From sequence record MK327931.1: a stretch of 64,000 nt of DNA; one strand, written 5' to 3'. Positions 5,385 through 18,983 of the stretch are shown here, piece after piece. The notes below the pieces were generated by a model. That model was not told the origin of the DNA, did no database searches, and was given only the letters and a program-made list of their open reading frames with translations. The position numbers and the translations under genes were made by a program. How positions within the stretch are numbered: the stretch's first letter is position 1; each line of letters opens with the position of its first letter.

Positions 5385-5437
5385 TTTGTTTCTCCCGTGT
5401 TGGTATATGTACATAGTACTAAAACATTTGAGTACTG

Positions 5438-5692: not shown

Positions 5693-5753
5693 TTTGTTTG
5701 TCCTATAAAAAAGGCGGGAACTGATCCCGCCGTGTTGTTAGTACTGCAAGTTA

Positions 5754-6149
5754 TTAGATAACCTGGCGGCGTTTACTGAATACTGTTACACGATTACCCT
5801 TACGGTCGTGTCGGATCTCTTTCTGGTTGCGAATCAGTTCACTTGGACGCTTAAGGTTTGCCAGGTGATCCGCGTGAGTCCATGCGGTGTGGTTTACCTG
5901 TACTTTGATATCAGAATCAGCGATAAACTCATCTTGTGCGTCAAGTATTGCCGCCAGCATATCCGCTCGTTTTAGTTCTGCTGCTGTCAGTACTGGCTCA
6001 GGTGAATTCACAATATCAGAGATTTCTTTGAACTGTACGGCCCAGCGTTGACCTTTCGGTGCATCTTTGCCCATGTCTTTAAATGCTGCTCCTTCCTCGC
6101 GTGCAACAATACGGGCAGCTTCACGGGTAGCGTAGAATTTAGTAATCAT
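5754..6149 (-). CDS. hypothetical early protein, paralogue of 17936-18202
   Basis: shares (F/Y)ATRE.AR..AR..GA.FKDMG, G.RWA and DRKGNRVTV. Confidence 0.85.
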   Translation of the reverse strand: MITKFYATREAARIVAREEGAAFKDMGKDAPKGQRWAVQFKEISDIVNSPEPVLTAAELKRADMLAAILDAQDEFIADSDIKVQVNHTAWTHADHLANLKRPSELIRNQKEIRHDRKGNRVTVFSKRRQVI

Positions 6150-6244
6150 GGTATACATCCTATTAGTTGAGATAGTACTACAAGTTAGAGTCTATTATAA
6201 AGTACTATCTGGGCAATGTCAAATAGTACTTTAAATGGATTCTA

Positions 6245-6568
6245 TTACATGTCTTTCTTACGTTTTACATCGTAGTATCGAACTGTAATTTCTTTGTTGA
6301 TCTCTTCCTCGATGCGGTGAATAACTTTTTCTTTCGGGTTGAAACCTATAACGGTTTCTTTAATGATCTCCAAGCCCGTGTATTCGCCTTGTGTACCGTA
6401 ACCGTATGTAAAGGTTTCGTGTCCCAGGTCTTCCCAGCGGTCGCCAATTAACGCTGACACGTAGCAAGAGTGGTAAGTATTGCCGTTCCGATCAGTCCAG
6501 CGATTAACTTTAATGTCAAAGGAGGTTACAATTTTCAGTTCTACTTTCTGGGTAAGGATCATAGCCAT
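6245..6568 (-). CDS. hypothetical early protein, paralogue of 12363-12686
   Basis: shares RWTD..GNTYHSC.VS, E.FTYGY and RKKD. Confidence 0.85.
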   Translation of the reverse strand: MAMILTQKVELKIVTSFDIKVNRWTDRNGNTYHSCYVSALIGDRWEDLGHETFTYGYGTQGEYTGLEIIKETVIGFNPKEKVIHRIEEEINKEITVRYYDVKRKKDM

Positions 6569-6929
6569 TTTTATTTCTCTCTCTTTGTTAGGAGGGGAAC
6601 CATTCCCCTCGCTTGATGTAAACTATTATACAGTACTAAGATACTTTGTCAATACTTATTTTTTGGAAAGTTTACGCATTAATTCTACGCTTTCTTGTGA
6701 ACGTTTTGCTACCTGGCAAGCTGTATGGGCAGTAAACATTTTTGTATAGTCTGACGCTTTGCCACCAAACCGAGCGGCACGTTCACGGGCACTTGGAACT
6801 AATACTATTTCTTTCTTGCAGATAGTGCACTTAGCCATTTTTATTTCTCTCTCTTTGTTAGGAGGGGAACCGTTTCCCCTCACTTGATGTAAACTATTAT
6901 ACAGTACTAAGATACTTTATCAATACTTA
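6563..6929. repeat. about 95-bp near-identical direct repeats (6563-6657, 6833-6929) flanking one gene
   Basis: agccattttt(t)atttctctctctttgttaggaggggaacc...gatgtaaactattatacagtactaagatacttt in both. Confidence 0.9.
6656..6838 (-). CDS. small putative Zn-binding protein (60 aa; CxxC...HxxC)
   Basis: MAKCTIC...AHTACQ; start after GAGAG SD. Confidence 0.75.
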   Translation of the reverse strand: MAKCTICKKEIVLVPSARERAARFGGKASDYTKMFTAHTACQVAKRSQESVELMRKLSKK

Positions 6930-7202
6930 AGTATTGTAAATGTCGTGAATAGTGATAAAGTTTTTACGACCGTAAACCTGCAAATCAATATCAATGTAGT
7001 GCTTATCTAGTACATCCTCGACGCTTAACGCGGTGTCGTGGATATCTTCGTAGAATTGAGGATCTACAATCTTGCTTAAGTCATCCGGCGTTAACTTATC
7101 GTTAAGCCATTGAACCGCCTGGATATCTGCTTCACGTTTCCAGTCTTCCAGGTTAGTAGTCAGTACTTGTTCGATTTCGTTAGCTGTCAGTAGAATCCGC
7201 AT
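6927..7202 (-). CDS. hypothetical acidic early protein (91 aa)
   Basis: AAGGA SD and promoter. Confidence 0.8.
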   Translation of the reverse strand: MRILLTANEIEQVLTTNLEDWKREADIQAVQWLNDKLTPDDLSKIVDPQFYEDIHDTALSVEDVLDKHYIDIDLQVYGRKNFITIHDIYNT

Positions 7203-7271
7203 TTTTATGTTTCCTTATCAGTGGTTGATGTAAGTATTATACTCGTTTACTTTCTATTGTCAAACTATTTT

Positions 7272-7379
7272 ATCAGGGGAGTTTTTCGTATGTCTTACTC
7301 CTGGACTACTTAACAGGGTTACTTATTTCGTTCCCCGTCCTGATGTAAAACATTATACTTGATTCTAAGTACAATGCAA
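7272..7379 (-). ncRNA. promoter-driven 73-nt structured RNA, family B copy 1
   Basis: TTGCAT-17-TATAAT; ATCAGG..CCTGAT ends; GGAGT-AAGACATACGAAAA-ACTCC; no start codon. Confidence 0.6.
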
Positions 7380-7424
7380 GTACTTTTTTAAAAATAGTTT
7401 TCAGTACTAGCCACCAGCAAACAA

Positions 7425-7508
7425 TAGATACATTTATGCACCCTGTGGGCTGATTTGTTTCTATGCGTATATAATAGCAAAGGGACTGACCGGAGTCAAT
7501 CCCTTTTT
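7425..7508 (-). ncRNA. two-hairpin RNA module, family A copy 3
   Basis: TTGACT-17-TATTAT; GCCCACAGGGTGCA-TAAA-TGTATCT. Confidence 0.6.
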
Positions 7509-7517
7509 CAAATATTT

Positions 7518-7667
7518 TTAAACTTCTTTCGGGTTGCGATAGGTGATAGCGTTCGGGTACATTTGTTTAATGTTATTCCATGCCTGGTTAACATTATAAC
7601 CACTTGAGCGAATCAGTTGGTTACTACCGACACCTTGAAACACTACTTCGAATAAGAATTCTTTCAT
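7518..7667 (-). CDS. small hypothetical protein (49 aa, MKEFLFEV)
   Basis: read by hand; GAGGTG SD; coupled to upstream ORF. Confidence 0.7.
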   Translation of the reverse strand: MKEFLFEVVFQGVGSNQLIRSSGYNVNQAWNNIKQMYPNAITYRNPKEV

Positions 7668-7837
7668 GCTTTCACCTCGCTATCTGCTTTACCTTTACGC
7701 CAGGACATTACTAATTGTTCGCGTTGCCATAAGTCGAGTGATACAAAAAGTTTTGCGGTATCACTTTTAGGATACTCGCCAGTAGTACCTAACCGATAAA
7801 ACAGATCTTTCAGTACTGATAATTCTACTTGAATCAT
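7664..7837 (-). CDS. small hypothetical protein (57 aa, MIQVELS)
   Basis: read by hand; CAGGAG SD. Confidence 0.7.
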   Translation of the reverse strand: MIQVELSVLKDLFYRLGTTGEYPKSDTAKLFVSLDLWQREQLVMSWRKGKADSEVKA

Positions 7838-7926
7838 TTTATTACTCCTGATTGCGTTAATACTTCTACTATTGCATGAATGATCATAAGTACAGCTAAC
7901 ACAATAATCATCGGATTCATTTGCAT
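7834..7926 (-). CDS. small hydrophobic peptide (30 aa)
   Basis: read by hand; AAGGAG SD; single TM-like stretch. Confidence 0.6.
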   Translation of the reverse strand: MQMNPMIIVLAVLMIIHAIVEVLTQSGVIK

Positions 7927-7943
7927 AAGCTGTACTCCTTATA

Positions 7944-8156
7944 TTAATCTTTCAGCCAATGATCTTGAATGAATTTTTCACCGTATCCCTGTTTCATGGA
8001 TTCTAACAGGCGTTCGCGGTGAGCGGCGGCATATTGCTCAGTACTATGCGTTACGCCAGGCTGATAACGTGATACCCCATCCGGTCCGATGTATTGTACA
8101 TCCCACGGTTTTTCGTTAGTATCAGACCATTTACGAACGATTAGTTGACCTTGCAT
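7944..8156 (-). CDS. hypothetical early protein (70 aa)
   Basis: GAGG SD; promoter cassette. Confidence 0.8.
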   Translation of the reverse strand: MQGQLIVRKWSDTNEKPWDVQYIGPDGVSRYQPGVTHSTEQYAAAHRERLLESMKQGYGEKFIQDHWLKD

Positions 8157-8239
8157 TTTTCTTTCCTCTCAGTGGGGAGAATCATTTCTCCCCTTCATGT
8201 AACTTATTATACAGTACTAGATTATCTTGTCAATAGTTT

Positions 8240-8563
8240 TTATTCACCTTGTTTGAATTTAGTTTTCTCCATTGATTCCATGATTGCAACCAATACGCTG
8301 TGGATCTCGCTTAACGCGGAATCACTGAAAGCATTAATGAATAGTCGATCATTCTCGCGAATATTTTTAATGTACTTTTCAGCAGTAGTTGCGAATTCAT
8401 TCAACGGTAGATCAAATGCTTTATCCCATGATGGATGGCGTAATTGTAACAGTACTGGATTATCACGATCACCAGGGGAAAACGTACCAGTGATGAAACA
8501 TACGCCCGGAATACTTTCGAACTGGCAACGGACTTCCTTTGTGATAGTAGTATGAATGTACAT
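8240..8563 (-). CDS. hypothetical early protein (107 aa)
   Basis: GAGGA SD. Confidence 0.8.
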   Translation of the reverse strand: MYIHTTITKEVRCQFESIPGVCFITGTFSPGDRDNPVLLQLRHPSWDKAFDLPLNEFATTAEKYIKNIRENDRLFINAFSDSALSEIHSVLVAIMESMEKTKFKQGE

Positions 8564-8590
8564 TTATTGTTATCCTCTATTAAATTAATA

Positions 8591-8779
8591 TTACAGTTTA
8601 TGAATCAATTCTTTATCTAAGCGATAGCGTACATTATTAATAGTAACGGCATTGTTTTTAATGCTACGCTGTACAGGTCCACCAGCAATAACAAATGTTG
8701 CTTTATTACCCCGAACAATGATAGCACTTCCAGGATTACCGAAATCATCTTGTACTAAAATACTTGATAAGTTTTCCAT
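8591..8779 (-). CDS. hypothetical early protein (62 aa)
   Basis: GAGG SD; promoter cassette. Confidence 0.75.
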   Translation of the reverse strand: MENLSSILVQDDFGNPGSAIIVRGNKATFVIAGGPVQRSIKNNAVTINNVRYRLDKELIHKL

Positions 8780-8860
8780 TTTCATTTCCTCTTAGTAGGG
8801 GAAGATGTTTCCCCTTGATGTAAGTACTATAACACTACTGGATAGTACTGTCAATACTTT

Positions 8861-9118
8861 TTATCTCATAGATCTATGCCAACAATTACGCGGGGGACGT
8901 TTAAAAGTACTATCATGATCCTCCTGGCAAGTTATGCAGTACTTACATCCCTTAACAGCCTGGCGGCGATTCTCAGGGATTTTATCGCCACAGTCGAGGC
9001 AATGTATCAGTGATTCTATTTGTGCGTTAATTTGCTTTCTAGCGTGGTTTACGGCGGCCTGAATCACTGCGTTAATCTCGTCTTGTTCGGCCCCGTCTTT
9101 CGCGAATCCTACAGCCAT
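8861..9118 (-). CDS. TraR/DksA C4-type zinc-finger protein, YbiI-like
   Basis: MAVGFAKDGAEQDEI..., CLDCGDKIPENRRQAVKGCKYCITCQ matches the YbiI/TraR pattern. Confidence 0.9.
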   Translation of the reverse strand: MAVGFAKDGAEQDEINAVIQAAVNHARKQINAQIESLIHCLDCGDKIPENRRQAVKGCKYCITCQEDHDSTFKRPPRNCWHRSMR

Positions 9119-9315
9119 TATTTTAACCTTTTTCTATCATTAATTAATGCTTTCAGTACTATACTAATAACTTGCAATGATTCATCAATGACTATAAAAT
9201 TATTTTCTTTCATTAGATGATAGTTACCATTGATATTATATTCTAACGAGTACTGTTTACGTTTAATTTTTGATAATGTTTCTATTTGTTTTTGTACTGA
9301 TTTCATGCTAATCAT
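9118..9315 (-). CDS. hypothetical basic protein (65 aa)
   Basis: ORF track; TAATG coupling. Confidence 0.7.
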   Translation of the reverse strand: MISMKSVQKQIETLSKIKRKQYSLEYNINGNYHLMKENNFIVIDESLQVISIVLKALINDRKRLK

Positions 9316-9384
9316 TGTTAAACGTCCTGTAACGCATTCTAACGAGATAAACGGTTTAGTACTGGCATTGTATAGGGTAATGAA

Positions 9385-9415
9385 TTAAAGCCCACCAGCG
9401 TTAACCAGTGGGCTA
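9385..9415 (-). terminator. intrinsic terminator-like hairpin containing a Chi site
   Basis: agcccac..gtgggct stem followed by T-run on minus strand; CCACCAGC at 9392. Confidence 0.6.
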
Positions 9416-9420
9416 TAATC

Positions 9421-9564
9421 TTACATCTTGCGGATAATCTTAACAGTATCTTTCACCGATTTACCGTCTTGCTGGCATTGCTCGATCATTGCGTATTGTT
9501 CTGCGGTCAGATCCTCGCCAGTTTTTGCCAGTACTGCGTCGATGAATGAATCCAGTGCGATCAT
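9421..9564 (-). CDS. small hypothetical protein (47 aa), paralogue of 13303-13455
   Basis: read by hand; GKSVKDTVKII vs GKTINETASII. Confidence 0.7.
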   Translation of the reverse strand: MIALDSFIDAVLAKTGEDLTAEQYAMIEQCQQDGKSVKDTVKIIRKM

Positions 9565-9663
9565 TTTATTTCTCTCTTAGGTTAAGTTAACTACTGTTTA
9601 TAAAACTTATTATACAGTACTATCAAACGTTGTCAATATATTTAATAGTACTGGTAATATATT

Positions 9664-9843
9664 TTAGCGGTAATCGTCGTATGCTTTATTCACCTGGCGA
9701 ATGTAACTTTCAAAGGCTTCGTCTACCGTTTCATACTCCCGAACATAATCACCATAGGAAACTACATACATACCTTTTTGATCTTCAAACGTCATGATGA
9801 TAGAATCCAGACCAACGATTTCAGTTTTTGCGATGATAGCCAT
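9664..9843 (-). CDS. small hypothetical protein (59 aa, MAIIAKTE)
   Basis: read by hand; AAGGA SD and promoter. Confidence 0.75.
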   Translation of the reverse strand: MAIIAKTEIVGLDSIIMTFEDQKGMYVVSYGDYVREYETVDEAFESYIRQVNKAYDDYR

Positions 9844-9936
9844 TTTTTTAATTCCTTAGTAGTGTAGTTGATAAAACTTATTATGCCAGTACTATCAATC
9901 ATTGTCAATAGCTTTGATAGTACTGTGATAATATTT

Positions 9937-10149
9937 TTAGTTAATGATAGTCAGTGTAAAATTGTAATCACCACAGCGATATAGCACGTTATTCCCAAAT
10001 GTTCCAACTAATCGCACATCACACAAAACGCCGGTTTTTTCTTTTACTTCCTTGATACTTGTAACTCCTGTAATATCTTTATTAAAGTATTCATGATCTG
10101 AAAATAAAACTTGTTTTGCATTTTTTAATTTCGACCGGATATTAGCCAT
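9937..10149 (-). CDS. hypothetical early protein (70 aa)
   Basis: GAGAG SD; promoter cassette. Confidence 0.8.
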   Translation of the reverse strand: MANIRSKLKNAKQVLFSDHEYFNKDITGVTSIKEVKEKTGVLCDVRLVGTFGNNVLYRCGDYNFTLTIIN

Positions 10150-10244
10150 TTTGTTTTCTCTCTGTTAGTGGGGAGAAGTTTTTCTCCCCTTGATGTAAAC
10201 TATTATACAGTACTATAATCTATTGTCAAACTATTTTTTTTATA

Positions 10245-10586
10245 TTATTCGAAATCTTCTGGACCGGACTGATAATCATCTTCACCGTATGCACTTTCTA
10301 ACTTCTCGCCAGTGTGGTCATCAGTTAGTGAGTCATCCTCATAGTTCACGTCTACGCCAGTGATGTAAAACTGGCTATCGTCTGGATCATTGAAATTAAT
10401 TTTCTGTATGTTTACAATAACTGTATTGATGCCCAGGACACCGCCATCAGCCGTTACAAAGTACTGATATTTTTCACAACCGCCTGAATTGAAACCGTAA
10501 TTAATTTCGGCCCGACCATCATTTAAACGCAGTGCCTGAGCGATGATTTCATTTTCAAAGTTAGATTGAGCAATTGAGATAGTCAT
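10245..10586 (-). CDS. acidic conserved phage hypothetical protein (113 aa)
   Basis: DGGVL...NYED..L.DH....ESAYGE pattern; promoter cassette. Confidence 0.8.
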   Translation of the reverse strand: MTISIAQSNFENEIIAQALRLNDGRAEINYGFNSGGCEKYQYFVTADGGVLGINTVIVNIQKINFNDPDDSQFYITGVDVNYEDDSLTDDHTGEKLESAYGEDDYQSGPEDFE

Positions 10587-10707
10587 GATTTGTTTCCTTA
10601 TTACCAGGGGAAACCGTTTCCCCTTTCGATGTAAAACATTATACGCTTATTGAGATAGTTTGCAAGTACTTTTTAAAAATAGTTTTCAGTACTCAAACAT
10701 TATACAA

Positions 10708-10797
10708 TAGATACACTCCTGCACCCTGTGGGCTAGTGAGCTATCTCTCAATGAATATATAATAGCAAAATGGCTGACCGAAGTCAACCACTTTTTT
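10708..10797 (-). ncRNA. two-hairpin RNA module, family A copy 4
   Basis: TTGACT-17-TATTAT; TGAG-AGATAG-CTCA; GCCCACAGGGTGCA-GGAG-TGTATCT. Confidence 0.6.
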
Positions 10798-10934
10798 CAT
10801 TTATTTTTAGCTTTTAGAATCGCCGCCTTTCGTGTCATTCCTTGTTTGATGTACTCCTTTACTTTCGCTTTTTTAGCGTTTACCTTGTCTGCTTTCGTTT
10901 TAGGAGTACTGTAAATTATACCGTTAGGATTCAT
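10797..10934 (-). CDS. small very basic protein (45 aa)
   Basis: read by hand; MNPNGIIYSTPKTKADKVNAKKAK... Confidence 0.65.
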   Translation of the reverse strand: MNPNGIIYSTPKTKADKVNAKKAKVKEYIKQGMTRKAAILKAKNK

Positions 10935-11024
10935 TTAAATCACCATAAAGAATAGATAGGTTACTAACAACGCCGCGATCAATGCACCGACCAGGGCCGA
11001 ACTATAGTAAGCTAATGTTTTCAT
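10935..11024 (-). CDS. small hydrophobic peptide (29 aa)
   Basis: read by hand; coupled to neighbours. Confidence 0.55.
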   Translation of the reverse strand: MKTLAYYSSALVGALIAALLVTYLFFMVI

Positions 11025-11173
11025 TTTTTAGCCTGAAAATAATGTTTAATTTGTGCGGCGGTCAATGCACAATTACGCAGGAAGTTTTCTGTATAACTGC
11101 GGCGAGTACTGAAAGAGAATTGACCTTTGCCGTTGCCGATAGTAACATCAAACCGAGCGTTGTATTGTTTCAT
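11021..11173 (-). CDS. small hypothetical protein (50 aa, MKQYNARF)
   Basis: read by hand; AAGGAG SD; promoter cassette. Confidence 0.75.
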   Translation of the reverse strand: MKQYNARFDVTIGNGKGQFSFSTRRSYTENFLRNCALTAAQIKHYFQAKK

Positions 11174-11257
11174 TTTGATTCTCCTTGTATCAGGGGAGAA
11201 CCATTTCCCCCCCCTCTATGTAAACAATTATACAGTACTGGAAACTAATTGCAAGTA

Positions 11258-11404
11258 CTATTTTTTAGATTTACGCAAACTTTCTACCATCTCAGGAGTA
11301 AGGCCCGGCGGGTAGGAAACCACTTCATCCACAAAACGCAAAGGGAATACCCCAGCGAAAGGTGAACGTGCTTTCTTGTTAGTACTCTTTTTTGATGCTT
11401 TCAT
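11258..11404 (-). CDS. small basic protein (48 aa)
   Basis: read by hand; AAGGA SD; promoter cassette. Confidence 0.65.
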   Translation of the reverse strand: MKASKKSTNKKARSPFAGVFPLRFVDEVVSYPPGLTPEMVESLRKSKK

Positions 11405-11473
11405 TTCATATTCCTTAATTAGTGGGGAGAATCATTTCTCCCCTTCATGTAAAACATTATACAGTACTGAAAA

Positions 11474-11683
11474 CTAATTGCAAGTACTATTTGAAAGTAA
11501 ATGCTCATACGCTGCATTAACTACGTTTTCAATAACCGACTGTACAGAAAGATCCCCCACGTCCCGGCTATAGTAGAAATCGCTTACAGTGGTGTCATCG
11601 TATGCAAATACTTTACCAGGTACGGCATCAATCACATACATATTAACCTTTAAGATGTCGATCTTATCCTGTACAGTAAGCAT
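11474..11683 (-). CDS. hypothetical early protein (69 aa)
   Basis: ORF track; AAGG SD. Confidence 0.75.
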   Translation of the reverse strand: MLTVQDKIDILKVNMYVIDAVPGKVFAYDDTTVSDFYYSRDVGDLSVQSVIENVVNAAYEHLLSNSTCN

Positions 11684-11688
11684 ATTAA

Positions 11689-11961
11689 TTAACCTTTTAA
11701 GTACTGGCTTAAGTAGTCTTGTTGATCTTCGGTGATTGCAGCCATCTTCCCTAGTACTGGATTGATGATATAATCCCCTGTAACGTCCTGTAACGCATTC
11801 TCAGGCGGTTTAACGGCTGGGGTAGCCATAGCCATTGCCTGGACTTGTTCGACGCTGTAACGCTCATAAAGGCGGCATTCTTCCGGTGTTAACATAGCAT
11901 CAGTACGCTTCATCGGTTTAATGATGCTTTCGATCTCATTCAGTACTTGATTAACGTTCAT
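11689..11961 (-). CDS. hypothetical early protein (90 aa)
   Basis: ORF track; GGGA SD. Confidence 0.75.
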   Translation of the reverse strand: MNVNQVLNEIESIIKPMKRTDAMLTPEECRLYERYSVEQVQAMAMATPAVKPPENALQDVTGDYIINPVLGKMAAITEDQQDYLSQYLKG

Positions 11962-12012
11962 GGTATAATCCCCAATATAAGCGGCCTGAATCGACCGCTA
12001 ACGATGTTTTGA

Positions 12013-12282
12013 TTAATAGGTGTATGGTTGACGTTCAAACAATGATTGCACGTTGTACGCCCCACTAATGGGCTTTGCTGGTAAATCAATTTTATATTGT
12101 TCACGCTTAAAGATAATAAAACGGCAATTGTTTTTTACATCAAAATTGATTGAACGTTCCAGGAGTTTTCCATCGTGTACAAATACAAGATAACCGCTTG
12201 CTACTTGTTTTGTAGTACTGGTTGCAACCATAGACCGACGAACATGCGTACCTGCATCGATTAAAGTACTGATATTTTTCAT
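12013..12282 (-). CDS. hypothetical early protein (89 aa)
   Basis: GAGGA SD; own promoter. Confidence 0.8.
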   Translation of the reverse strand: MKNISTLIDAGTHVRRSMVATSTTKQVASGYLVFVHDGKLLERSINFDVKNNCRFIIFKREQYKIDLPAKPISGAYNVQSLFERQPYTY

Positions 12283-12362
12283 TATACGATCCTCTTAAGT
12301 TAATTTAATTTCTTTCCCCTATGCAGACACTATATCAAAGTATCTGCATAAAGTAAAGCTAA

Positions 12363-12686
12363 TTAAAGATCTTTTTTGCGTTTAACATTCTGTACAGTAC
12401 AATGCAACGGGATATTAAGATCATTGCACACACGAGTAAGGGAGGTTTCATCAGTATTAAGCCCGTCTACTGATTCCTTTAAGAGAGATAACGCCGTTTG
12501 TTGATATGCATCTTCATAGCCATAAGTAAATGATTCAACCGCCAGATCATTCAAACCGTTATCCAGTTCAACGCTTACATGACAAGAATGATAAGTATTG
12601 CCATATGAATCAGTCCAACGTTTACCGTCAACATTGATTGCACGGATTGCAGCCAGGGAAACGGTGTTAATGATAGTTTTAGCCAT
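12363..12686 (-). CDS. hypothetical early protein, paralogue of 6245-6568
   Basis: shared RWTD..GNTYHSC motif. Confidence 0.85.
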   Translation of the reverse strand: MAKTIINTVSLAAIRAINVDGKRWTDSYGNTYHSCHVSVELDNGLNDLAVESFTYGYEDAYQQTALSLLKESVDGLNTDETSLTRVCNDLNIPLHCTVQNVKRKKDL

Positions 12687-12775
12687 TTTTGTATTCCTTA
12701 AATTAATATGTTGTCTTGATAAAATCTATTATGCCAGTACTATCAAACTATGTCAATAGTACTGTGATAATATTT

Positions 12776-12919
12776 TTACTTACTTTTTGCTTTCTTTGCT
12801 GCTTCCACCTGGTCGGCCCATTCTTTACCCCATACTTGTAAATTATAATGGTACTGGCAAAGAGCAACGCCCCGCTTTAAACCCGTAATAGATTTCTGAC
12901 CACATTGACAAGTTTTCAT
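12776..12919 (-). CDS. small putative Zn-binding protein (47 aa; CxC...CxxH)
   Basis: read by hand; AAGGA SD; promoter cassette. Confidence 0.7.
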   Translation of the reverse strand: MKTCQCGQKSITGLKRGVALCQYHYNLQVWGKEWADQVEAAKKAKSK

Positions 12920-13005
12920 TTTAGTTTCCTTGTAGTGGGGAGAACCATTTCTCCCCTTGATGTAATGTATTATACTTTATTCGATTTACTTTGCAAGTAC
13001 TTTTT

Positions 13006-13233
13006 TTAATTTAATTCATCCAGGCAAAGGATACGCTCAACGCCCAAATCAGTTAAACTAATCGACGGCACTTGATAGGTTTCAATGTATGCTACACTTG
13101 CCCACTGACCGAACTCATTAACGGCCCAGGTATTCATTGCATTTTGCAATTCCGCACCTTCCTTGTTGGTAATTACAGCAACAGTAGAAGAATTACCAGT
13201 AGTACCAGATACGCGAGTGATTACGATAGCCAT
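13006..13233 (-). CDS. hypothetical early protein (75 aa)
   Basis: AGGA SD; own promoter. Confidence 0.8.
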   Translation of the reverse strand: MAIVITRVSGTTGNSSTVAVITNKEGAELQNAMNTWAVNEFGQWASVAYIETYQVPSISLTDLGVERILCLDELN

Positions 13234-13302
13234 TTTTTAATTCCTATTCAGTAGTTGATGTATGTATTATGTCAGTACTTAAAACTATTGTCAAACTATT
13301 TT

Positions 13303-13455
13303 TTAAAGTTTATCAATGATTGATGCCGTTTCATTGATAGTCTTGCCGTGTTTTGCACACGCGATAACTGCTTTAAATTCCTTTGATGACCAATCTTTCT
13401 TGCTGCATACTGACATTACTTGTAAAGTAAAACAATCCAGTTCATAAGTATTCAT
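13303..13455 (-). CDS. small hypothetical protein (50 aa), paralogue of 9421-9564
   Basis: read by hand; GAGGA SD. Confidence 0.7.
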   Translation of the reverse strand: MNTYELDCFTLQVMSVCSKKDWSSKEFKAVIACAKHGKTINETASIIDKL

Positions 13456-13669
13456 CTTTAAATCCTCAGTTAGTTAAGGTGTCTCGCCTTGATGTAATTA
13501 ATTATACGCTAATCTCTTAATCGTGCAAGTACTTTTTATTACTTTTTGCAAAATACTTTAAACGCTCTCAATCGCATTCTAACGACCTTAACTCCACCAG
13601 CTAGGGCGATGTATCAGATAATCAGTTTAATGCGTTAGGCGGTGCTAGTGGACTGGAATACTATAGACA

Positions 13670-13711
13670 CAAAAAAGCCCACTGTTTAAGGTGGGCTAGT
13701 GATTCAGTACT
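13670..13711 (-). terminator. intrinsic terminator, identical to 14406-14447
   Basis: agcccac-cttaaaca-gtgggct plus T6 on minus strand; 42-bp exact duplicate. Confidence 0.85.
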
Positions 13712-13718
13712 TTAATTT

Positions 13719-14201
13719 TTATGCTTCAACTTTGCGATGAGCTTCGATCCATTCCTCGCGAGTCATACCGCTTTCTTTGATAGCGTCCAGTACTACCGCA
13801 ATGCAGTTACCGCGTACAGGAATCAAATGTTCTTCCCCGTTATCAAGTACTACCGCTACACGTTCCTGAATCCATTTTTTAGGCTTAGATTCCGGCTTAT
13901 CTTCACCATACTTAACCGCCAGGGCTTTATGTGCCATTTCCACAACCACTTCCAGATCCAATCCAGACACTGCCGCCTGAATACTTTCAATTGTTGCTTG
14001 TAGTTCTGCTTCACGGGCTTTTTTCTGTTCTTCCAGTTCTGCTACCTTTTTGGCTTGCAGTTCTTTCGCAGTACTGTACGCAATGTTAAAATTGTTGCGT
14101 ACCGCTTTCATGGTATCGCTATCCAGTTCAGCCAGGATTTCTGCCGCTACGTTAGTTTCATTTGCTACCAGTGCTTTGATGAATGATTTTACATTAGCCA
14201 T
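13719..14201 (-). CDS. H-NS/StpA-like protein (160 aa) with divergent DNA-binding loop
   Basis: coiled coil plus GLDLEVVV; C-terminal VLDNGEEHLIPVRGNCIAVVLDAIKESGMTREEWI aligns by eye to H-NS [35 protein letters not shown]. Confidence 0.6.
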   Translation of the reverse strand: MANVKSFIKALVANETNVAAEILAELDSDTMKAVRNNFNIAYSTAKELQAKKVAELEEQKKAREAELQATIESIQAAVSGLDLEVVVEMAHKALAVKYGEDKPESKPKKWIQERVAVVLDNGEEHLIPVRGNCIAVVLDAIKESGMTREEWIEAHRKVEA

Positions 14202-14263
14202 TTTATAAATCCTCAATTAAAGTTTAGTTTACGTTAGATAGTGTATCAAAGTTTTCTCGACGT

Positions 14264-14352
14264 GTCCAGTTTTTCGTTCGACTTACTGGCGGTCTACTTA
14301 GTGCTCCCCGTCTTGATGTAATACATTCTACGCTTTTCTGTGGTAATGTCAA
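14264..14352 (-). promoter_or_regulatory. sigma70 promoter and structured 5' leader (family B RNA motif) of the H-NS-like gene
   Basis: TTGACA-17-TAGAAT; ACATCAAGACGGGGA..TAAGTAG..CCAGT-AAGTCGAACGAAAA-ACTGG. Confidence 0.65.
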
Positions 14353-14405
14353 CTACTTTTTTAAAACTATTTTTAAAGTATCTCAGTACTACGATACTAC
14401 AAAAA

Positions 14406-14447
14406 CAAAAAAGCCCACTGTTTAAGGTGGGCTAGTGATTCAGTACT
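14406..14447 (-). terminator. intrinsic terminator, identical to 13670-13711
   Basis: exact 42-bp duplicate. Confidence 0.85.
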
Positions 14448-14450
14448 AGA

Positions 14451-14750
14451 TTATAAACAGTTAATTACTCCGGTGTGCGTTACTTTCTCAGTATCCATAA
14501 CCGTGACCGATCCACGCTTAGTACTGGCATCATAATAAATTGTGGTGCTACCGTTTTCGTCTTCTTCATGGAACGGGCCGTTTTTAAATGCTTCCGGCTG
14601 GATCTCTAAATCCTTTAATACAATCTCGCCAGTTCTTTCATCGGTCATTGCAACAGTGCACTGAATGAATTTTTCATTACTTACATCTAATGACGCATTA
14701 ACAGCGAAAGAGGAAACAGATAAAGCCAGGGCGATGATTGCAATTTTCAT
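14451..14750 (-). CDS. putative exported protein (99 aa)
   Basis: signal peptide MKIAIIALALSVSSFAVNA. Confidence 0.8.
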   Translation of the reverse strand: MKIAIIALALSVSSFAVNASLDVSNEKFIQCTVAMTDERTGEIVLKDLEIQPEAFKNGPFHEEDENGSTTIYYDASTKRGSVTVMDTEKVTHTGVINCL

Positions 14751-14834
14751 TTGATTATCCTTAGTTACCAGGGGGAACCGCTCCCCCTTGCTATGTAAAA
14801 TATTATACAGTACTAAAAACTAATTGCAAGTACT

Positions 14835-15071
14835 TTATGATTTTTTATAAAACATTTCGGCAGTGATATTTTTACCCGTTGGCTGTACTTTATCCAGAAT
14901 TTTTTGATGCCCTGGCCGTCCAAATGAATATGATCCGTAAACCGTAAACCAGTAGTTACCCTCAGTGTTTACATGTACAGCACAATAGGGAACGCCCCGC
15001 GATTCATCACTAGTAAAGTGTGCTACCGTTCCCGTTACATTCGAAGTCGTTGATTTGATTTGTTCAAGCAT
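14835..15071 (-). CDS. hypothetical early protein (78 aa)
   Basis: AAGGA SD; promoter cassette. Confidence 0.8.
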   Translation of the reverse strand: MLEQIKSTTSNVTGTVAHFTSDESRGVPYCAVHVNTEGNYWFTVYGSYSFGRPGHQKILDKVQPTGKNITAEMFYKKS

Positions 15072-15178
15072 TTTCTTATTCCTTAGTTACCAGGGGAACC
15101 GCTCCCCTATGCAAAACATTATACGCGTTTAAAAACTAATAGCAAGTATTTTAATAAAAAGTATTTGGAAAATAATTG

Positions 15179-15260
15179 TTGACAAGTGCATCCAGTACTG
15201 GCATAATTACTACATCAAGACGAAACAGTCACTAACCCACCGGGTGCATAGATCCGTCTA
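15179..15260 (+). ncRNA. two-hairpin RNA module, family A copy 5 (plus strand)
   Basis: TTGACA-17-CATAAT; GAC-GAAACA-GTC; CCCACCGGGTGCA-TAGA-TCCGTCT; no ORF downstream. Confidence 0.55.
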
Positions 15261-15313
15261 TTAAATGATTCAGTACTGAAAAAGTAACGGGGAGTTATTA
15301 TCTCCCCGCGTTG

Positions 15314-15535
15314 TTATTTTGTAAGGTATAAACAGAAGTCACCTTTATTTGCTACGCCGCCAGTGTAACGCGATGAATAGTTAGAAATATCTTGTACTTC
15401 TGCTATTACCAGTGTATCATCATTCATTTCGTCGCAGAAGCAAACGGCTGGATCTTTTACGCCGATATTGTCGGCATGTTCCCGCATAGATTTAACCAGT
15501 GCTTCCAGTTGAGAAAGAGTAGTGATATTAGCCAT
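15314..15535 (-). CDS. hypothetical early protein (73 aa)
   Basis: start moved to ATG after GAGGA. Confidence 0.8.
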   Translation of the reverse strand: MANITTLSQLEALVKSMREHADNIGVKDPAVCFCDEMNDDTLVIAEVQDISNYSSRYTGGVANKGDFCLYLTK

Positions 15536-15621
15536 TGTATTTTCCTCATTACCAGGGAGAACCATTTCTCCCCTCTATGTAAACTATTATACAGTACTGA
15601 AAACTAATTGCAAGTACTTTT

Positions 15622-15825
15622 TTAATTTAATTGCTTTAAAACATACTCAAAGACACCACGCACATCATTGATCATCGCCTGGCGGTTAGCAGGTAACGCA
15701 TCAGGATCGCCACTATCCCAGGCATTGATAAAACTCCCCAAATCATGATAGATTTTATTCTGTAAGCCGATTAACTGTAATTCTTTTTCTTCAAGCTCTT
15801 TGATGCGGTCGATTAAATCACTCAT
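15622..15825 (-). CDS. hypothetical early protein (67 aa)
   Basis: start moved to ATG after ACTGAGGATTATCTA, the same leader as the upstream gene. Confidence 0.75.
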   Translation of the reverse strand: MSDLIDRIKELEEKELQLIGLQNKIYHDLGSFINAWDSGDPDALPANRQAMINDVRGVFEYVLKQLN

Positions 15826-15842
15826 TAGATAATCCTCAGTAC

Positions 15843-16127
15843 TTAACTGTAAGATCCGCAACGGTCGCAGTAGTGCCCGTCCTCGTCATCGTCAACGAAT
15901 TGACCGACGAAATGATCTACTTTCGCTTTCAGGTTATTATAATCGTTTTCTACTTCATTTAAACGCTTCTGGTAGTATTCCAGTGCTTTAAGATATGCCG
16001 CATCAGCAGTTTTCTCCTGCATAGCTAAATTCATGCCACGCGTTTCATCGTACAGCCAAAAACCATCGGTGCACTGGCTAATAGATAATGACTTGCTTAG
16101 TACTGTATAGTTAATTACTTTACCCAT
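15843..16127 (-). CDS. hypothetical protein, coiled coil plus C-terminal CxxC (94 aa)
   Basis: GAGGA SD; YCDRCG end. Confidence 0.8.
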   Translation of the reverse strand: MGKVINYTVLSKSLSISQCTDGFWLYDETRGMNLAMQEKTADAAYLKALEYYQKRLNEVENDYNNLKAKVDHFVGQFVDDDEDGHYCDRCGSYS

Positions 16128-16219
16128 TAGATAATCCTCAGTAAAGGCGGGAACTATTCCCCGCCTCGATATAAAGTATTATACGTTAATCTAACTACAA
16201 TGCAAGTACTTTTTAAATT

Positions 16220-16486
16220 TTATAATCCTTTTACTGCATCAGGTGCGACTACTCCATCAATGTATTGAACATCGTTTTCAACTTCACGGGCGGCATCATT
16301 CAGCAGATCAAAATTAAATTCCATTTCTTCCAGATCATCGAAATCAGGCTCATAACCATTAATTGTTGAATAAGTCCAAGTACCTTTTTCATAAGTTACG
16401 ACACTTACATCAGGGAAGAAATCTTGCACATGATCCATCGCATCCCGAACCAATTGATGTGCAGTTGTGATATTTAAAGTTTTCAT
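16220..16486 (-). CDS. hypothetical acidic early protein (88 aa)
   Basis: promoter cassette; D/E rich. Confidence 0.8.
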   Translation of the reverse strand: MKTLNITTAHQLVRDAMDHVQDFFPDVSVVTYEKGTWTYSTINGYEPDFDDLEEMEFNFDLLNDAAREVENDVQYIDGVVAPDAVKGL

Positions 16487-16579
16487 TTTGTTGCCCTTTT
16501 AGTGTGAGCGGGGAACCACTCCCCGCCTCGATGTAAAGTATTATACGCTTTTAAACTTAGTTTGCAAGTACTTTTTAAA

Positions 16580-17191
16580 TTAATATGCGATTGATTCTAC
16601 TACGTCATCAATAACATTGAATTGATATTCGTTACCCTCAATCAGTGCCGTAATGTTTTCAGTAGTGAATTGATCCTCATATGCATTCTCTAAATCACGG
16701 TACAACTTGCGGGATAATTCACGAATAGTTTCAGTGAGTAGTTCCTCAAGCTCATTAACTAACGTTTCTTGTTTTGCGGTTAAATCAGTGTAAGCCGATT
16801 CAATGTACCCGCTTACAGTATTCTCATGCGAGTAGTGGGAGTGAGAACGCTTTACACTCATCGCCAAATCATCTTCATTCAGCAGGTGACGGATTGAGCG
16901 ATACTTAGTTAATGCTCTTACCTTGCGTAAAAACTTCACTGCGTCAACGTGGTCAGTACTGATTGATGCACCGTCACCCTGGGACCAAAAACCACTGAAT
17001 TGTATTTCAGCTTCATTAATGCCATATTCCGGTAGTACTGTTTCTTTATAGTATTCAATTTCACTTTCAGAAAAATAATTGTCGTTTGAGTTTTTTTCAC
17101 GTTCCCGAACCAGTTCGATAGCTGACGTTTTTTGTTCTGCGTTCAATTCAGAAAAATCCATAACGAAAGTAGTAGTAGTGATAGTTTTCAT
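16580..17191 (-). CDS. conserved phage hypothetical acidic protein (203 aa; FSGFWSQGDGA motif)
   Basis: ORF track; GAGG SD; own promoter. Confidence 0.85.
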   Translation of the reverse strand: MKTITTTTFVMDFSELNAEQKTSAIELVREREKNSNDNYFSESEIEYYKETVLPEYGINEAEIQFSGFWSQGDGASISTDHVDAVKFLRKVRALTKYRSIRHLLNEDDLAMSVKRSHSHYSHENTVSGYIESAYTDLTAKQETLVNELEELLTETIRELSRKLYRDLENAYEDQFTTENITALIEGNEYQFNVIDDVVESIAY

Positions 17192-17259
17192 TTTGTAACC
17201 CTCATTCAGTAGTTGATGTAAGTATTATACGCTTTTAAAAACATTTGTCAAACTATTTT

Positions 17260-17369
17260 ATCAGGGGAGTTTTTCGTGTGCCTTACTCCTGGGCTACTTA
17301 ACGGGAAGTTACTTATTTCGTTCCCCGTCCTGATGTAAAACATTATACGCCTTTAAACATAGTTTGCAA
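17260..17369 (-). ncRNA. promoter-driven 75-nt structured RNA, family B copy 2
   Basis: near-identical to 7272-7346; TAAC/GTTA stem with variable loop; GGAGT-AAGGCACACGAAAA-ACTCC. Confidence 0.6.
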
Positions 17370-17414
17370 GTACTTTTTAAAAATAGTTTTCAGTACTGAA
17401 TATTTAAAAAAGTA

Positions 17415-17488
17415 TTGACAGCATTATCAAGTACTGGCATAATATACCCCATGACAACAGCTAACCCACCGGGTGCACAATTGTAACT
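17415..17488 (+). ncRNA. two-hairpin RNA module, family A copy 6 (plus strand)
   Basis: TTGACA-17-CATAAT; CCCACCGGGTGCA-CAAT-TGTAACT. Confidence 0.55.
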
Positions 17489-17508
17489 ATACTAAACTAC
17501 TTTTTCTA

Positions 17509-17587
17509 TAGATACACTCCCGCACCCTATGGGCTACGGCTTATCTGCCAATGAATACATTATGCCAGTACTGACAAAATAAGTCAA
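17509..17587 (-). ncRNA. two-hairpin RNA module, family A copy 7, convergent with copy 6
   Basis: TTGACT-17-CATAAT; GGC-AGATAA-GCC; GCCCATAGGGTGCG-GGAG-TGTATCT. Confidence 0.6.
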
Positions 17588-17617
17588 TACCGGCAATTGT
17601 AAAGATTTGTAAACTGC

Positions 17618-17848
17618 TTATACTGCAATCGCGTCCAGGCTATAATAATAATAAGTGCCGTATTGGTGTACTTTATTACCTTTTATTTCAGTACTGAATG
17701 AATCCGAACGGTTTGCATATGATGTTAATTTAAAGTACTTTGATTTGCTGATACGTTGCCATACACCGCAGATCCGCTGTAAGTAAGTAGTTTTATTCGT
17801 GGTAGTATCTTTTACAGTTTTAACTTCAGTCATATACATATTAGTCAT
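17618..17848 (-). CDS. hypothetical early protein (76 aa)
   Basis: GGAG SD; promoter cassette. Confidence 0.8.
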   Translation of the reverse strand: MTNMYMTEVKTVKDTTTNKTTYLQRICGVWQRISKSKYFKLTSYANRSDSFSTEIKGNKVHQYGTYYYYSLDAIAV

Positions 17849-17935
17849 TTTTATTACTCCAGGTTATAGGCGGGAAGAGTTCCCGCTCTCGATGTAAAAC
17901 ATTATACGCCATTAAACATAGTTTGCAAGTACTTT

Positions 17936-18202
17936 TTATTCAAGTACTGCAATCTTTTTAGTACGGTACACGGTCACGCGGTTGCCCTTTCGGTCGAGCT
18001 TTATTTCTACCACTCGACGCGATACACTATCAGGACTTTTCAACGCCGCTAACCAGTACTGTAATGATCTGGCGGTACTACGCTTTATAATGGCCCAACG
18101 TTTACCACGTTCCGATTGTACGCCCATATCTTTAAACGTTGCCCCGTCCTGGCGTGCGGCGATCCGAGCTTGTTCACGCGTCGCAAAATACTTAATATTC
18201 AT
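17936..18202 (-). CDS. hypothetical early protein, paralogue of 5754-6149
   Basis: shared motifs; start at MNIKYF. Confidence 0.8.
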   Translation of the reverse strand: MNIKYFATREQARIAARQDGATFKDMGVQSERGKRWAIIKRSTARSLQYWLAALKSPDSVSRRVVEIKLDRKGNRVTVYRTKKIAVLE

Positions 18203-18287
18203 GCTGTTGCCCTTATCGTTGGTGTATGAATAAAACACTATTATAAAGTACTATCGCAAAAAATGATAGTACTTTAAATAAATTCTA

Positions 18288-18527
18288 TTACATTCCAACC
18301 ATTGCAGCACGGATCGCAGTAGTGCTATATTTGAATCCGTCCGGCGTTTTATCTTGTCCAGTCTGTTCTAAAAATAACATCATATGACGGGCCGCATCAT
18401 TACGATTAGTATTGGCGGCAATAAAGTCCTGGGCCAACCGGTATAATGATTCATCGTTATTAATCCAAAGGCTTACATTCCAATGAGTTTTGTTTTTGTG
18501 ACCTAAGAACATTTTTGATTTAGCCAT
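18288..18527 (-). CDS. conserved phage hypothetical protein (79 aa; THWNVSLWINND motif)
   Basis: start moved to ATG after GAGGA. Confidence 0.8.
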   Translation of the reverse strand: MAKSKMFLGHKNKTHWNVSLWINNDESLYRLAQDFIAANTNRNDAARHMMLFLEQTGQDKTPDGFKYSTTAIRAAMVGM

Positions 18528-18620
18528 TTTTTTAATCCTCTTATATAGTGGGGAACTATTCCCCACCTGATGTAAAACATTATACGCTTTTAAACATAGT
18601 TTGCAAGTACTTTATTAAAC

Positions 18621-18983
18621 TTATTCGTAAATTTTGCCACTGTCAGCCCATACCAGGAAACGAGGCATATTATCCCATGCATCTTGTTTTAAATTTAAAC
18701 CGTGTAATACTTCTGTACTTTCCATTCCTGGTACTGGTTTACTATACACCGCGAAATTTTCGCCCATATACTGATAAACCATCGTCAAATCACTGGCGAT
18801 CATCTTATGGATCATCGCATCAAGCATCACGGTAGCGGCGTATTGTTCACGCTTAAGCGGCAACATTGTAATAAGTTCCCGATAAGCTGAAATGTGAATT
18901 TTTACCGTTTCAGCCGGAAGACCTTTCATCTCTTCACGGAAGTTGACCAGGTTAGAAATAATTTTATTGATTTGGGTCGCCAT
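18621..18983 (-). CDS. hypothetical early protein (120 aa)
   Basis: start moved to MATQIN; first promoter cassette of the zone at 19007-19072. Confidence 0.75.
   Translation of the reverse strand: MATQINKIISNLVNFREEMKGLPAETVKIHISAYRELITMLPLKREQYAATVMLDAMIHKMIASDLTMVYQYMGENFAVYSKPVPGMESTEVLHGLNLKQDAWDNMPRFLVWADSGKIYE

Follow-up and report, generated by a model that had tools for sequence, protein, structure and literature searches.

A conserved RNA motif in the early leaders of coliphages

Results

To take a closer look at three repeated elements in the jumbo coliphage vB_EcoM_G17 (MK327931.1), we analyzed bases 1-64000 of its genome, a stretch of 64,000 nucleotides that we refer to as the window. 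All genes concerned lie on the minus strand. Copy A is located at 7272-7344 and measures 73 nt from ATCAGG to CCTGAT, the end at 7346 given in the preliminary description including the two bases AC that precede it. Its upstream promoter (7352-7379; TTGCAT, 16 nt, TATAAT) belongs to a family of roughly 24 promoter copies between 0.8 and 20 kb, and by analogy with T7 A1 the start site is predicted at 7344-7346. A second promoter with 12 of 12 consensus positions (7236-7263; TTGACA, 16 nt, TATAAT) directly follows copy A and drives G17_00019 (6927-7202), which encodes a 91 aa protein of unknown function (phrog_14947); the same gene follows the motif in Justusliebigvirus muut. Copy B (17260-17334, 75 nt) is arranged in the same way, with an upstream promoter at 17342-17369 (TTGCAA, 16 nt, TATAAT) and a second promoter at 17224-17251 (TTGACA, 16 nt, TATAAT; 12 of 12) driving G17_00049 (16580-17191), which encodes a 203 aa protein of unknown function (phrog_5162). 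Copies A and B are about 90% identical and differ at three single bases and in the 3' strand of the first hairpin.

Copy C (14264-14319) is a short form lacking both the outer stem and the first hairpin. Its transcription unit starts from a promoter at 14325-14352 (TTGACA, 16 nt, TAGAAT), with only two weak 9-of-12 promoter matches downstream of the motif, and contains G17_00042 (13719-14201), which encodes a 160 aa protein. An intrinsic terminator lies upstream of the unit (14412-14433) and a terminator with an identical stem-loop closes it (13676-13697). As the three copies lie inside the roughly 20-kb terminal repeat, there are six per packaged genome.

The observation that these are copies of one motif is confirmed: all three elements are present at the positions described, on the minus strand. 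The pattern TAAGTAG-N6-AGTAAG-N4-ACGAAAAACT matched three times without mismatch, against none in 100 shuffles, and a covariance model of the core found only these three sites in the window with 52.8 (A), 51.8 (C) and 49.1 bits (B), the next best hit scoring 9.8 bits. Copies A and B are both predicted to fold into a three-way junction, with -18.8 kcal/mol (z -2.06) and -19.4 kcal/mol (z -2.25), respectively. In copy A the outer stem is formed by 7339-7344 with 7272-7277, followed by the first hairpin (7313-7338), UAAGUAG (7306-7312) and the second hairpin (7278-7301) with the loop AAGACAUACGAAAA. UAAGUAG and the second hairpin are located at 17294-17300 and 17266-17289 in copy B and at 14294-14300 and 14266-14289 (CCAGU/ACUGG) in copy C.

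The exchange of GGAGT/ACTCC for CCAGT/ACTGG in the second hairpin, which the preliminary description had regarded as a double compensatory change, is real and is extended in other phages by CCUGU/ACAGG, CUUGU/ACAAG and CUUG/CAAG. Across 23 distinct sequences 93% of cells are paired and three of five pairs change on both sides, which was reached in none of 500 shuffles. In contrast, the TAAC/GTTA hairpin proposed there is not the best pairing, as ACGGGG(A) with (U)CCCYGU gives -18.8 kcal/mol against -10.1 kcal/mol and also occupies the position of a hairpin that covaries in T7-like phages. The outer stem ATCAGG/CCTGAT is invariant in all relatives and is therefore predicted but not supported by covariation. 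G-U pairs make the structure strand-specific, so that it forms in RNA rather than in duplex DNA.

In order to see whether the motif is private to this phage we searched for its core, which is UAAGUAG, 4 nt and a 5-bp stem around the loop AAG-NCRN-ACGAAAA. The same core is present in T7 (NC_001604) at 549-588, between the promoters A1 (+1 at 498) and A2 (+1 at 626), where it scores 62.9 bits, as well as in phiA1122 and about 440 T7-like records from many enterobacterial hosts. It was also found in 45 Asteriusvirus, rV5-like and Justusliebigvirus records, in Munch, in the Alcyoneusvirus phages K64-1/phiKp_21, in LTH01, in Hallingskeid and EJP2, and in one phiEco32-like contig, and the lineages covered include Munch-like and Erwinia jumbo phages. 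All 46 loci that we read as homologues score 35–67 bits with the next best score at 25 bits. The family is defined here by YAAGUAG, 4 nt, a 4–5 bp stem and the loop (N)UAAG-NCRN-AMGAAAR on the transcribed strand after a sigma-70 promoter, a definition that the three window copies fit with 49–53 bits. The loop positions are not absolutely invariant, as 121Q has AUGAAAA and LTH01 has AAGAAAA. The motif is absent from E. coli genomes at BLAST sensitivity, and the only good hits among bacterial-genome loci are two short contigs (1.1 and 2.7 kb) carrying the T7-type sequence, which we read as phage contamination. A search against Rfam 15 gave no hits at gathering score in the whole window, and with E up to 10 only unrelated noise appeared on copy A and on the T7, phiA1122 and L028 loci (L028 being one of the further loci examined).

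The core always starts 20–55 nt after a sigma-70 early start site and a second complete promoter nearly always follows, so that only some of the mRNAs of the gene behind it carry the motif. The same cassette precedes at least five different genes in different phages. Although copies A and B, like copy C, each have their own upstream promoter and no start codon, no terminator-like site lies between the motif and the next gene, and the second promoter starts 9–10 nt after the motif. They are therefore leader modules, forming the 5' part of a read-through leader, rather than the free-standing, terminated sRNA genes that had been proposed.

The gene behind copy C is plausibly H-NS-like. Its orthologues in EJP2, Munch, Hallingskeid, K64-1/phiKp_21 and the jumbo-phage contig L005 all follow the same motif at only 26–38% protein identity. 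G17_00042 itself has no Pfam hit, whereas its 36%-identical Alcyoneusvirus orthologue from phiKp_21 scores 26.1 bits on the Pfam model of the H-NS N-terminal oligomerisation domain (Histone_HNS_N), above the cut-off of 24.5. The family profile aligns to the C-terminal DNA-binding domain of H-NS (residues 63–136) with 71% probability (E = 3.7e-5), but the QGR loop (TWTGQGRTP in H-NS) is replaced by a shorter (T/R)GN(M/C) sequence and there is no hit to solved structures by sequence. The AlphaFold model is poor (pLDDT 64), which makes the fold search meaningless.

Discussion

Taken together, we read the three elements as copies of a widespread, strand-specific structured RNA domain that forms at the 5' end of immediate-early transcripts made by the host sigma-70 RNA polymerase in virulent phages of Enterobacterales, with the region between A1 and A2 of T7 being the best-known instance. 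Another hairpin usually precedes the core, and in the G17 type a terminal stem starting at about +1 also closes the whole structure. It travels as a horizontally exchanged module of a strong promoter plus the RNA in front of a second, complete promoter-gene unit, and therefore the RNA domain itself, not regulation of one particular gene, looks like the selected product. In this view the invariant unpaired bases would be the docking site of a conserved host factor, and the RNA would be made in bulk in the first minutes of infection and stay as part of the leader or be cut from it, in T7 by RNase III cutting at R0.3, to sequester or recruit that factor. While the motif, its structure, its position and its distribution follow from our analysis, the binding of a host factor and a role as decoy or recruiter are inferred, and we give this reading a probability of only about 0.4. 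The six copies per packaged genome would fit a dosage-dependent role. However, no binding partner has been identified, nothing here shows that the RNA accumulates or acts in trans, the strict position next to a promoter would fit a co-transcriptional role on RNA polymerase equally well, and in jumbo phages the motif stays linked to one gene family, which hints at gene-specific regulation there.

T7 is among the best-studied viruses, yet the papers we found treat this region only as promoters or as an internalisation signal, and the roughly 40-nt structured element in its first transcript, kept almost base for base in phages that share little else, has neither an assigned function nor an Rfam entry. 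Conservation this strong across podoviruses and several myovirus lineages, including jumbo phages, implies a common and important interaction with the host in the first minutes of infection, and its partner could reveal either a new way for phages to take over or evade the host through RNA or a new class of signal acting on host RNA polymerase. In T7 on E. coli K-12 the element is also cheaply accessible to experiment. The distribution further shows that regulatory RNA modules, not only genes, move horizontally between phage families. A more far-reaching possibility, which is not excluded but which we consider unlikely on present evidence, is that an immediate-early decoy or recruiter RNA binding a core host factor of Enterobacterales has been exchanged as a ready-made promoter-plus-RNA cassette between unrelated virulent phage families (T7-like, phiEco32-like, rV5-like and several jumbo lineages). 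One specific version follows from the conserved linkage to a phage H-NS homologue: the partner could be an H-NS-family protein (host H-NS or StpA, and the phage paralogue), and the RNA would then be part of an anti-silencing system.

It could also be possible, although we regard it as less likely, that the motif acts in cis on RNA polymerase like HK022 put, folding as it leaves the polymerase and binding the elongation complex to suppress pausing, backtracking or termination, so that polymerases starting at the first early promoter would become more processive. The motif always lies within the first 20–90 nt of a sigma-70 transcript, in T7 it sits in the A1–A3 early promoter cluster at the left genome end, in the phiEco32-like contig it sits between two tandem promoters, and an unidentified antitermination strategy has been postulated for the related phage 7-11. 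The G17 type starts at about +1 to +3, is about 75 nt long and has two stem-loops, as described for putL. In contrary, nearly all transcripts of the G17_00042 unit should carry the motif, as the unit has one strong promoter, yet it ends in a canonical terminator identical to the one upstream, and transcripts from the second promoters lack the motif. T7 A1 transcripts terminate normally at the early terminator in vitro, and inspection by eye revealed no -10-like pause element.

The interpretation of the preliminary description, in which one protein or RNA recognises the element and the free copies titrate a regulator of the H-NS-like mRNA, is only partly supported. A strand-specific RNA motif with a covarying stem and conserved unpaired bases does point to recognition by one factor. 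For a circuit in which the motif is the operator of the H-NS-like gene, bound by that protein or its regulator, speak its position in front of the orthologues of G17_00042, the H-NS-like character of the protein family, the reported RNA binding of H-NS-family proteins and the extra copies in the same early region. However, hundreds of T7-like phages, and rV5-like phages, keep the same invariant bases, although the first gene of T7 is 0.3/ocr and no counterpart of the H-NS-like gene is known there. In Munch, Hallingskeid and K64-1/phiKp_21 a second promoter lies between the motif and the gene, so that much of the mRNA would escape control, and copies A and B have no terminator. Any recognising factor is therefore more likely host-encoded than the H-NS-like protein of the phage; titration remains possible, but a private circuit is not supported and we consider it unlikely.

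Similarly doubtful is a passive 5' stabiliser or processing signal, in which the paired 5' end would protect the leader from 5'-end-dependent decay or the element would mark a cleavage site. The outer stem begins at the predicted start site, the neighbouring promoters all carry a simple GGGG...CCCC hairpin at the 5' end and an A/U-rich stretch follows the outer stem, but a stabiliser does not need 20 invariant unpaired bases kept across unrelated phage families, and in T7 the motif lies 340 nt before gene 0.3 and RNase III separates it from that mRNA. Least likely is a DNA-level element, either an upstream activating or UP-like site for the second promoter or a recombination hot spot like the PeSL cassettes of T4-type phages, because, even though the motif contains an A-tract, nearly always lies just upstream of a TTGACA box and has clearly moved between genomes and gene contexts, the compensatory changes with G-U intermediates are strand-specific, the distance from the second hairpin to the -35 box varies from 2 to 42 nt without helical phasing, and no second promoter follows closely in the loci L012/L021 or L028 and only a weak one in copy C.

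Among described systems the leader between A1 and A2 of T7, part of its untranslated early leader, is the closest, with a homologous core consisting of UAAGUAG, 4 nt, a 4–5 bp stem and the loop (A)UAAG-UCGC-ACGAAAAA, a preceding hairpin and the -35 box of the next promoter behind it. It differs from the G17 type in having no closing outer stem, a short first hairpin (CCGG-GGUCAA-CCGG) with a separate 5' hairpin before it, and one copy per genome. The PeSL cassettes (promoter-early stem-loops) of the T4-type phages RB49 and phi1 (PMC2839356, PMC4122927) likewise combine a strong sigma-70-like promoter and an AT-rich upstream region with an adjacent GGGG...CCCC stem-loop, are repeated many times in front of small orphan genes and are shuffled between genomes. 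The roughly 24 copies in G17 fit this description, and the motif copies share their promoter and start region. However, the PeSL stem-loop is a simple hairpin said to act as a terminator, whereas the motif has a second hairpin with a long conserved loop, is not followed by a U-tract and is conserved in sequence across phage families. The HK022 put RNAs (putL, putR) are also about 70-nt, two-stem RNAs beginning just after an early host-polymerase promoter, but they are found in lambdoid temperate phages and show no sequence relationship, the best hit of our model in the complete HK022 genome being 8.2 bits (E = 1), and the termination signals directly downstream of copy C argue against antitermination here. 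Phage decoy RNAs such as RNA anti-CRISPRs and pseudo-ToxI antitoxin mimics offer a functional analogy only, as small structured phage RNAs that are made early, present in several copies and could sequester a host protein; no similarity to a CRISPR repeat or to ToxI was established and no target is known. Lambda nut and the rrn boxB-boxA-boxC leaders are promoter-proximal RNA signals as well, with a hairpin plus conserved single-stranded bases that recruit host factors. There is no boxA next to the G17 copies, while T7 has its boxA-like CGCTCTTTAACAA 230 nt further downstream and one metagenomic T7-like contig has it 20 nt after the motif.

Organisation and structure of the motif

The three copies of the motif are located in the early region of Escherichia phage vB_EcoM_G17 (MK327931.1, Asteriusvirus, 370 kb), whose published description reports terminal redundancies of about 20 kb. 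The window matches bases 1–64000 of this genome at the same coordinates, with 100% identity over the two short stretches tested and 99.7% over 6800–8000. As the motif copies lie inside this repeat, each of them occurs twice in the deposited genome. From 0.8 to 20 kb all genes are small, lie on the minus strand and have no assigned function, and about 24 of them are preceded by one family of sigma-70-type promoters (AAAAAGTAC-TTGCA, 16–17 nt, TATAAT; 800–20400, minus strand). Each promoter is followed by a start region ACAT(C/A)RAG and a simple GGGG...CCCC hairpin of the type GGGGAGAA-NNNN-TTCTCCCC, and then by a ribosome-binding site and a small orphan gene. This is the architecture described as PeSL cassettes in T4-type phages, and the start region also resembles that of the T7 promoter A1 (CCATCGAGAGGGAC).

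Read on the minus strand, copies A (7344 to 7272) and B (17334 to 17260) show a promoter followed by ACAUCAGG-ACGGGGA...CCCYGU-UAAGUAG-NCCA-GGAGU-AAGNCAYACGAAAA-ACUCC-CCUGAU and, 9–10 nt later, a second promoter with a perfect consensus (TTGACA, 16 nt, TATAAT), a short leader and the gene. Copy C (14319 to 14264) starts the same way (ACAUCAAGACGGGGA) but then goes straight to UAAGUAG-ACCG-CCAGU-AAGUCGAACGAAAA-ACUGG, and another 60 nt lead to the H-NS-like gene G17_00042. The shared pattern occurs three times in the window, whereas it was not found in shuffled sequences. Using a covariance model built from 23 distinct homologues we found only these three sites in the 64 kb, with scores of 49–53 bits, the next best hit scoring 9.8 bits. 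The preliminary description, which had reported two near-identical units and a covarying copy in the leader of the H-NS-like gene, was therefore confirmed in its observation.

The second hairpin is well supported. Across phage groups its stem reads GGAGU/ACUCC, CCAGU/ACUGG, CCUGU/ACAGG, CUUGU/ACAAG, CUUG/CAAG or CCUG/CGGG, with 93% of cells being paired against 38–50% when the partner is slid. Three of five pairs change on both sides and no shuffle out of 500 reaches the observed values. Even within Asteriusvirus, G17 (CCAGU/ACUGG) and EJP2 (CCUGU/CCAGG) differ by a flipped pair. The hairpin just before UAAGUAG covaries in T7-like phages (CCGG/CCGG, CCAG/CUGG, CCAC/GUGG, CUCC/GGGG, GCUG/CGGC), while in the G17 type the equivalent pairing is ACGGGG(A) with (U)CCCYGU, which varies only through G-C to G-U changes and small indels. 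That fold, closed by AUCAGG/CCUGAU, is the minimum-energy structure with –18.8 and –19.4 kcal/mol (z about –2.1 to –2.3), and the TAAC/GTTA pairing that had been proposed instead is 8.7 kcal/mol worse. The outer stem never varies and remains a prediction. G-U pairs in all helices make the structure specific to the transcribed strand. We also considered an alternative long-range pairing GGGA/UCCC, as phage muut (2509–2590) has one extra G in the 5' G-run and one extra C in the 3' C-run of the motif in comparison to its close relatives outra and EmilieFrey. This pairing gives only –5.6 kcal/mol, and the paired insertion could be a coincidence, a homopolymer sequencing error or a hint of alternative G-run/C-run pairing.

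Distribution of the motif

To take the analysis beyond G17 we searched for the motif in other genomes and found that it is not private to this phage. A BLAST search with copy A as query identified it in Justusliebigvirus (muut, outra, EmilieFrey) and in rV5-like phages (A73, W70, A7_1, A5-4), and a search with copy C identified the core in T7-like Yersinia phages and in other jumbo phages. In T7 itself it lies at 549–588, between the annotated start of promoter A1 (498) and the –35 box of A2 (start 626), with the sequence CCGGGGUCAACCGG-A-UAAGUAG-ACAG-CCUG-AUAAGUCGCACGAAAAA-CAGG-UA-TTGACA. A first pattern scan of IMG/VR, which demanded AGTAAG, found only three loci, but relaxing the pattern gave about 30 more T7-like contigs. 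A BLAST search with one further instance hit 440 phage records. Those examined are all roughly 40-kb genomes and the named ones are T7-like, with hosts including Escherichia, Klebsiella, Salmonella, Yersinia, Shigella, Citrobacter, Enterobacter, Pantoea, Serratia, Cronobacter and Pectobacterium. Further instances are present in Salmonella phage Munch, Klebsiella phages K64-1 and phiKp_21, the rV5-like LTH01, Erwinia phage Hallingskeid, a related jumbo contig (L005) and a 68-kb contig related to phiEco32-like phages. The covariance model scores all of these at 35–67 bits and everything else at 25 bits or less.

In contrast, a BLAST search of the core against 5,426 E. coli genomes gave no match, although short seed complementarity to host RNAs would not be detected this way. 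The only good hits among bacterial-genome loci are two short contigs (1.1 and 2.7 kb) carrying the T7-type sequence, which we read as phage contamination. Scans of genomes and metagenomes with a loose 16-base pattern returned mostly chance matches, from which the model separated at least about 13 real hits, a number that is no measure of how common the motif is in metagenomes.

Rfam 15 has no family for the motif, as neither a scan of the window at gathering score nor permissive scans of copy A and the T7-like loci gave anything relevant. Full-text literature searches, including one for the literal sequence, also did not reveal a paper describing it, even if an earlier mention cannot be excluded because most of the older work on T7 and T3 was outside the searchable literature. 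As a kind of element, a promoter-proximal structured leader RNA in phage early transcripts carried on a mobile promoter cassette, the motif has known relatives in PeSL, put and nut, but it is homologous to none of them.

Genomic context of the motif

The motif is always located on the transcribed strand, with UAAGUAG beginning 20–55 nt after a predicted or annotated sigma-70 start site. In nearly every case a second promoter follows, which lies 2 nt after the hairpin in T7-like phages, 14 nt in G17 copies A and B, and 17–42 nt in LTH01, SFPH2-like phages and Munch. The exceptions are the loci L012/L021, the metagenomic phage contig L028 and G17 copy C, which has only a weak TTGATA, 17 nt, TAAACT. 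In L028 (4111–4190) a boxA-like CGCTCTTTAACAA follows instead of a second promoter, the motif being followed 20 nt later by CGCTCTTTAACAATCTGG. In the window, one exact GCTCTTTAACAA, the boxA consensus as found in T7 at about 812, is present at 57595–57606 on the plus strand, but it is far from the motif and within chance expectation (36 of 100 shuffles). No intrinsic terminator follows the motif.

The cassette precedes different genes in different phages, namely the G17_00019 family in G17 and muut, the G17_00049 family in G17, PBECO4 and 121Q, and other genes in 121Q, A73, A7_1, EmilieFrey and outra. In jumbo phages, however, the short form is tied to one gene family, as orthologues of G17_00042 follow it in G17, EJP2, Munch, L005, Hallingskeid and K64-1/phiKp_21 at only 26–38% protein identity. 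In G17 this gene is bracketed by two terminators with an identical 22-nt stem-loop (AGCCCACCTTAAACAGTGGGCT) at 14412–14433 and 13676–13697, which makes it an insulated single-gene unit. Its leader ends in AAACUAAACUUUAAUUGAGGA (14225–14245, minus strand), which resembles the UUAACUUUA translational enhancer of T7 gene 10, and similar AACUUUAA strings precede the orthologues in Munch and 121Q.

The H-NS-like gene

G17_00042 itself has no significant Pfam hit, but its orthologue from phiKp_21 passes the curated threshold for the H-NS N-terminal domain (26.1 bits against 24.5). A profile of eight family members aligns to residues 63–136 of E. coli H-NS, whose sequence was entered by hand, with 71% probability. 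The predicted secondary structure, a long helix followed by two strands and two helices, fits to H-NS, although the AlphaFold model was of low confidence and too poor for a fold search, which was uninformative, and a profile search of solved structures found nothing. The QGR DNA-binding loop is replaced by a shorter (T/R)GN(M/C) sequence. The label H-NS-like is thus reasonable, but the protein may bind differently, or may act as an H-NS antagonist, the latter being inference only.

Proposed function

Twenty unpaired bases are kept almost unchanged in phage families that otherwise share no alignable DNA, while the stems drift and compensate, and this pattern indicates a specific partner. Since these phages share few proteins but share hosts, the partner is most likely a conserved host component. 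The gene behind the cassette has its own excellent promoter. In T7, A2 and A3 transcripts lack the motif, and RNase III cuts the leader away from the gene 0.3 mRNA at R0.3. Gene-specific control of translation or stability is therefore unlikely and the RNA domain itself looks like the product. We therefore favour a leader-embedded non-coding RNA that would be made in bulk at the very start of infection and would sequester or recruit a host factor, with a confidence of about 0.4 for the whole statement. The three copies in the terminal repeat fit a dosage argument. While the motif, its structure apart from the predicted outer stem, its position and its distribution follow directly from the sequence data, the binding of a host factor and the action of the RNA on it are inferred.

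The main alternative, which we regard as possible but less likely, is a put-like action on the transcribing polymerase. It fits the position and size of the motif, but it is weakened by the canonical terminator that closes the copy C unit, whose only strong promoter makes motif-bearing transcripts, and by the lack of any homology to put. The preliminary description had proposed that the free copies could titrate a regulator of the H-NS-like mRNA, and this interpretation was only partly supported. Such a private circuit is kept alive by the conserved linkage to the H-NS-like gene but it cannot explain the T7-like phages, and appears doubtful. A passive stabiliser, which is similarly unlikely, and a DNA-level site, the least likely of these readings, fit the conservation pattern poorly. 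Helical phasing with the second promoter, a –10-like pause element, an Hfq ARN tract, a CsrA GGA site and a tRNA mimic were set aside after inspection by eye only.

Other repeats in the window

A family of terminator-like hairpins with a conserved stem and loop (GGCTGACCGAAGTCAACC or GGGACTGACCGGAGTCAATCCC) is present at 1432–1487, 4184–4239, 7453–7508 and 10741–10796 and at nine sites between 43867 and 57227. In the copy at 7479–7506 the stem contains a TTGACT box, which together with TATTAT 17 nt downstream makes a promoter-like site, so that this would be a composite terminator-promoter. Three copies of a 95-nt composite repeat, consisting of a terminator hairpin, a promoter-like site and a second small hairpin (GCACCCTGTGGGCTG), are located at 1404–1498, 4156–4250 and 7425–7519. 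As one of them lies just upstream of motif copy A, G17_00019 may have three promoters in tandem, as T7 has A1–A3. On the plus strand between 25000 and 38000, eleven tandem units of about 1.2 kb each begin with a near-identical ribosome-binding site and ATGTTACCTTTTGGAAGAATG, which looks like a tandem array of paralogous genes.
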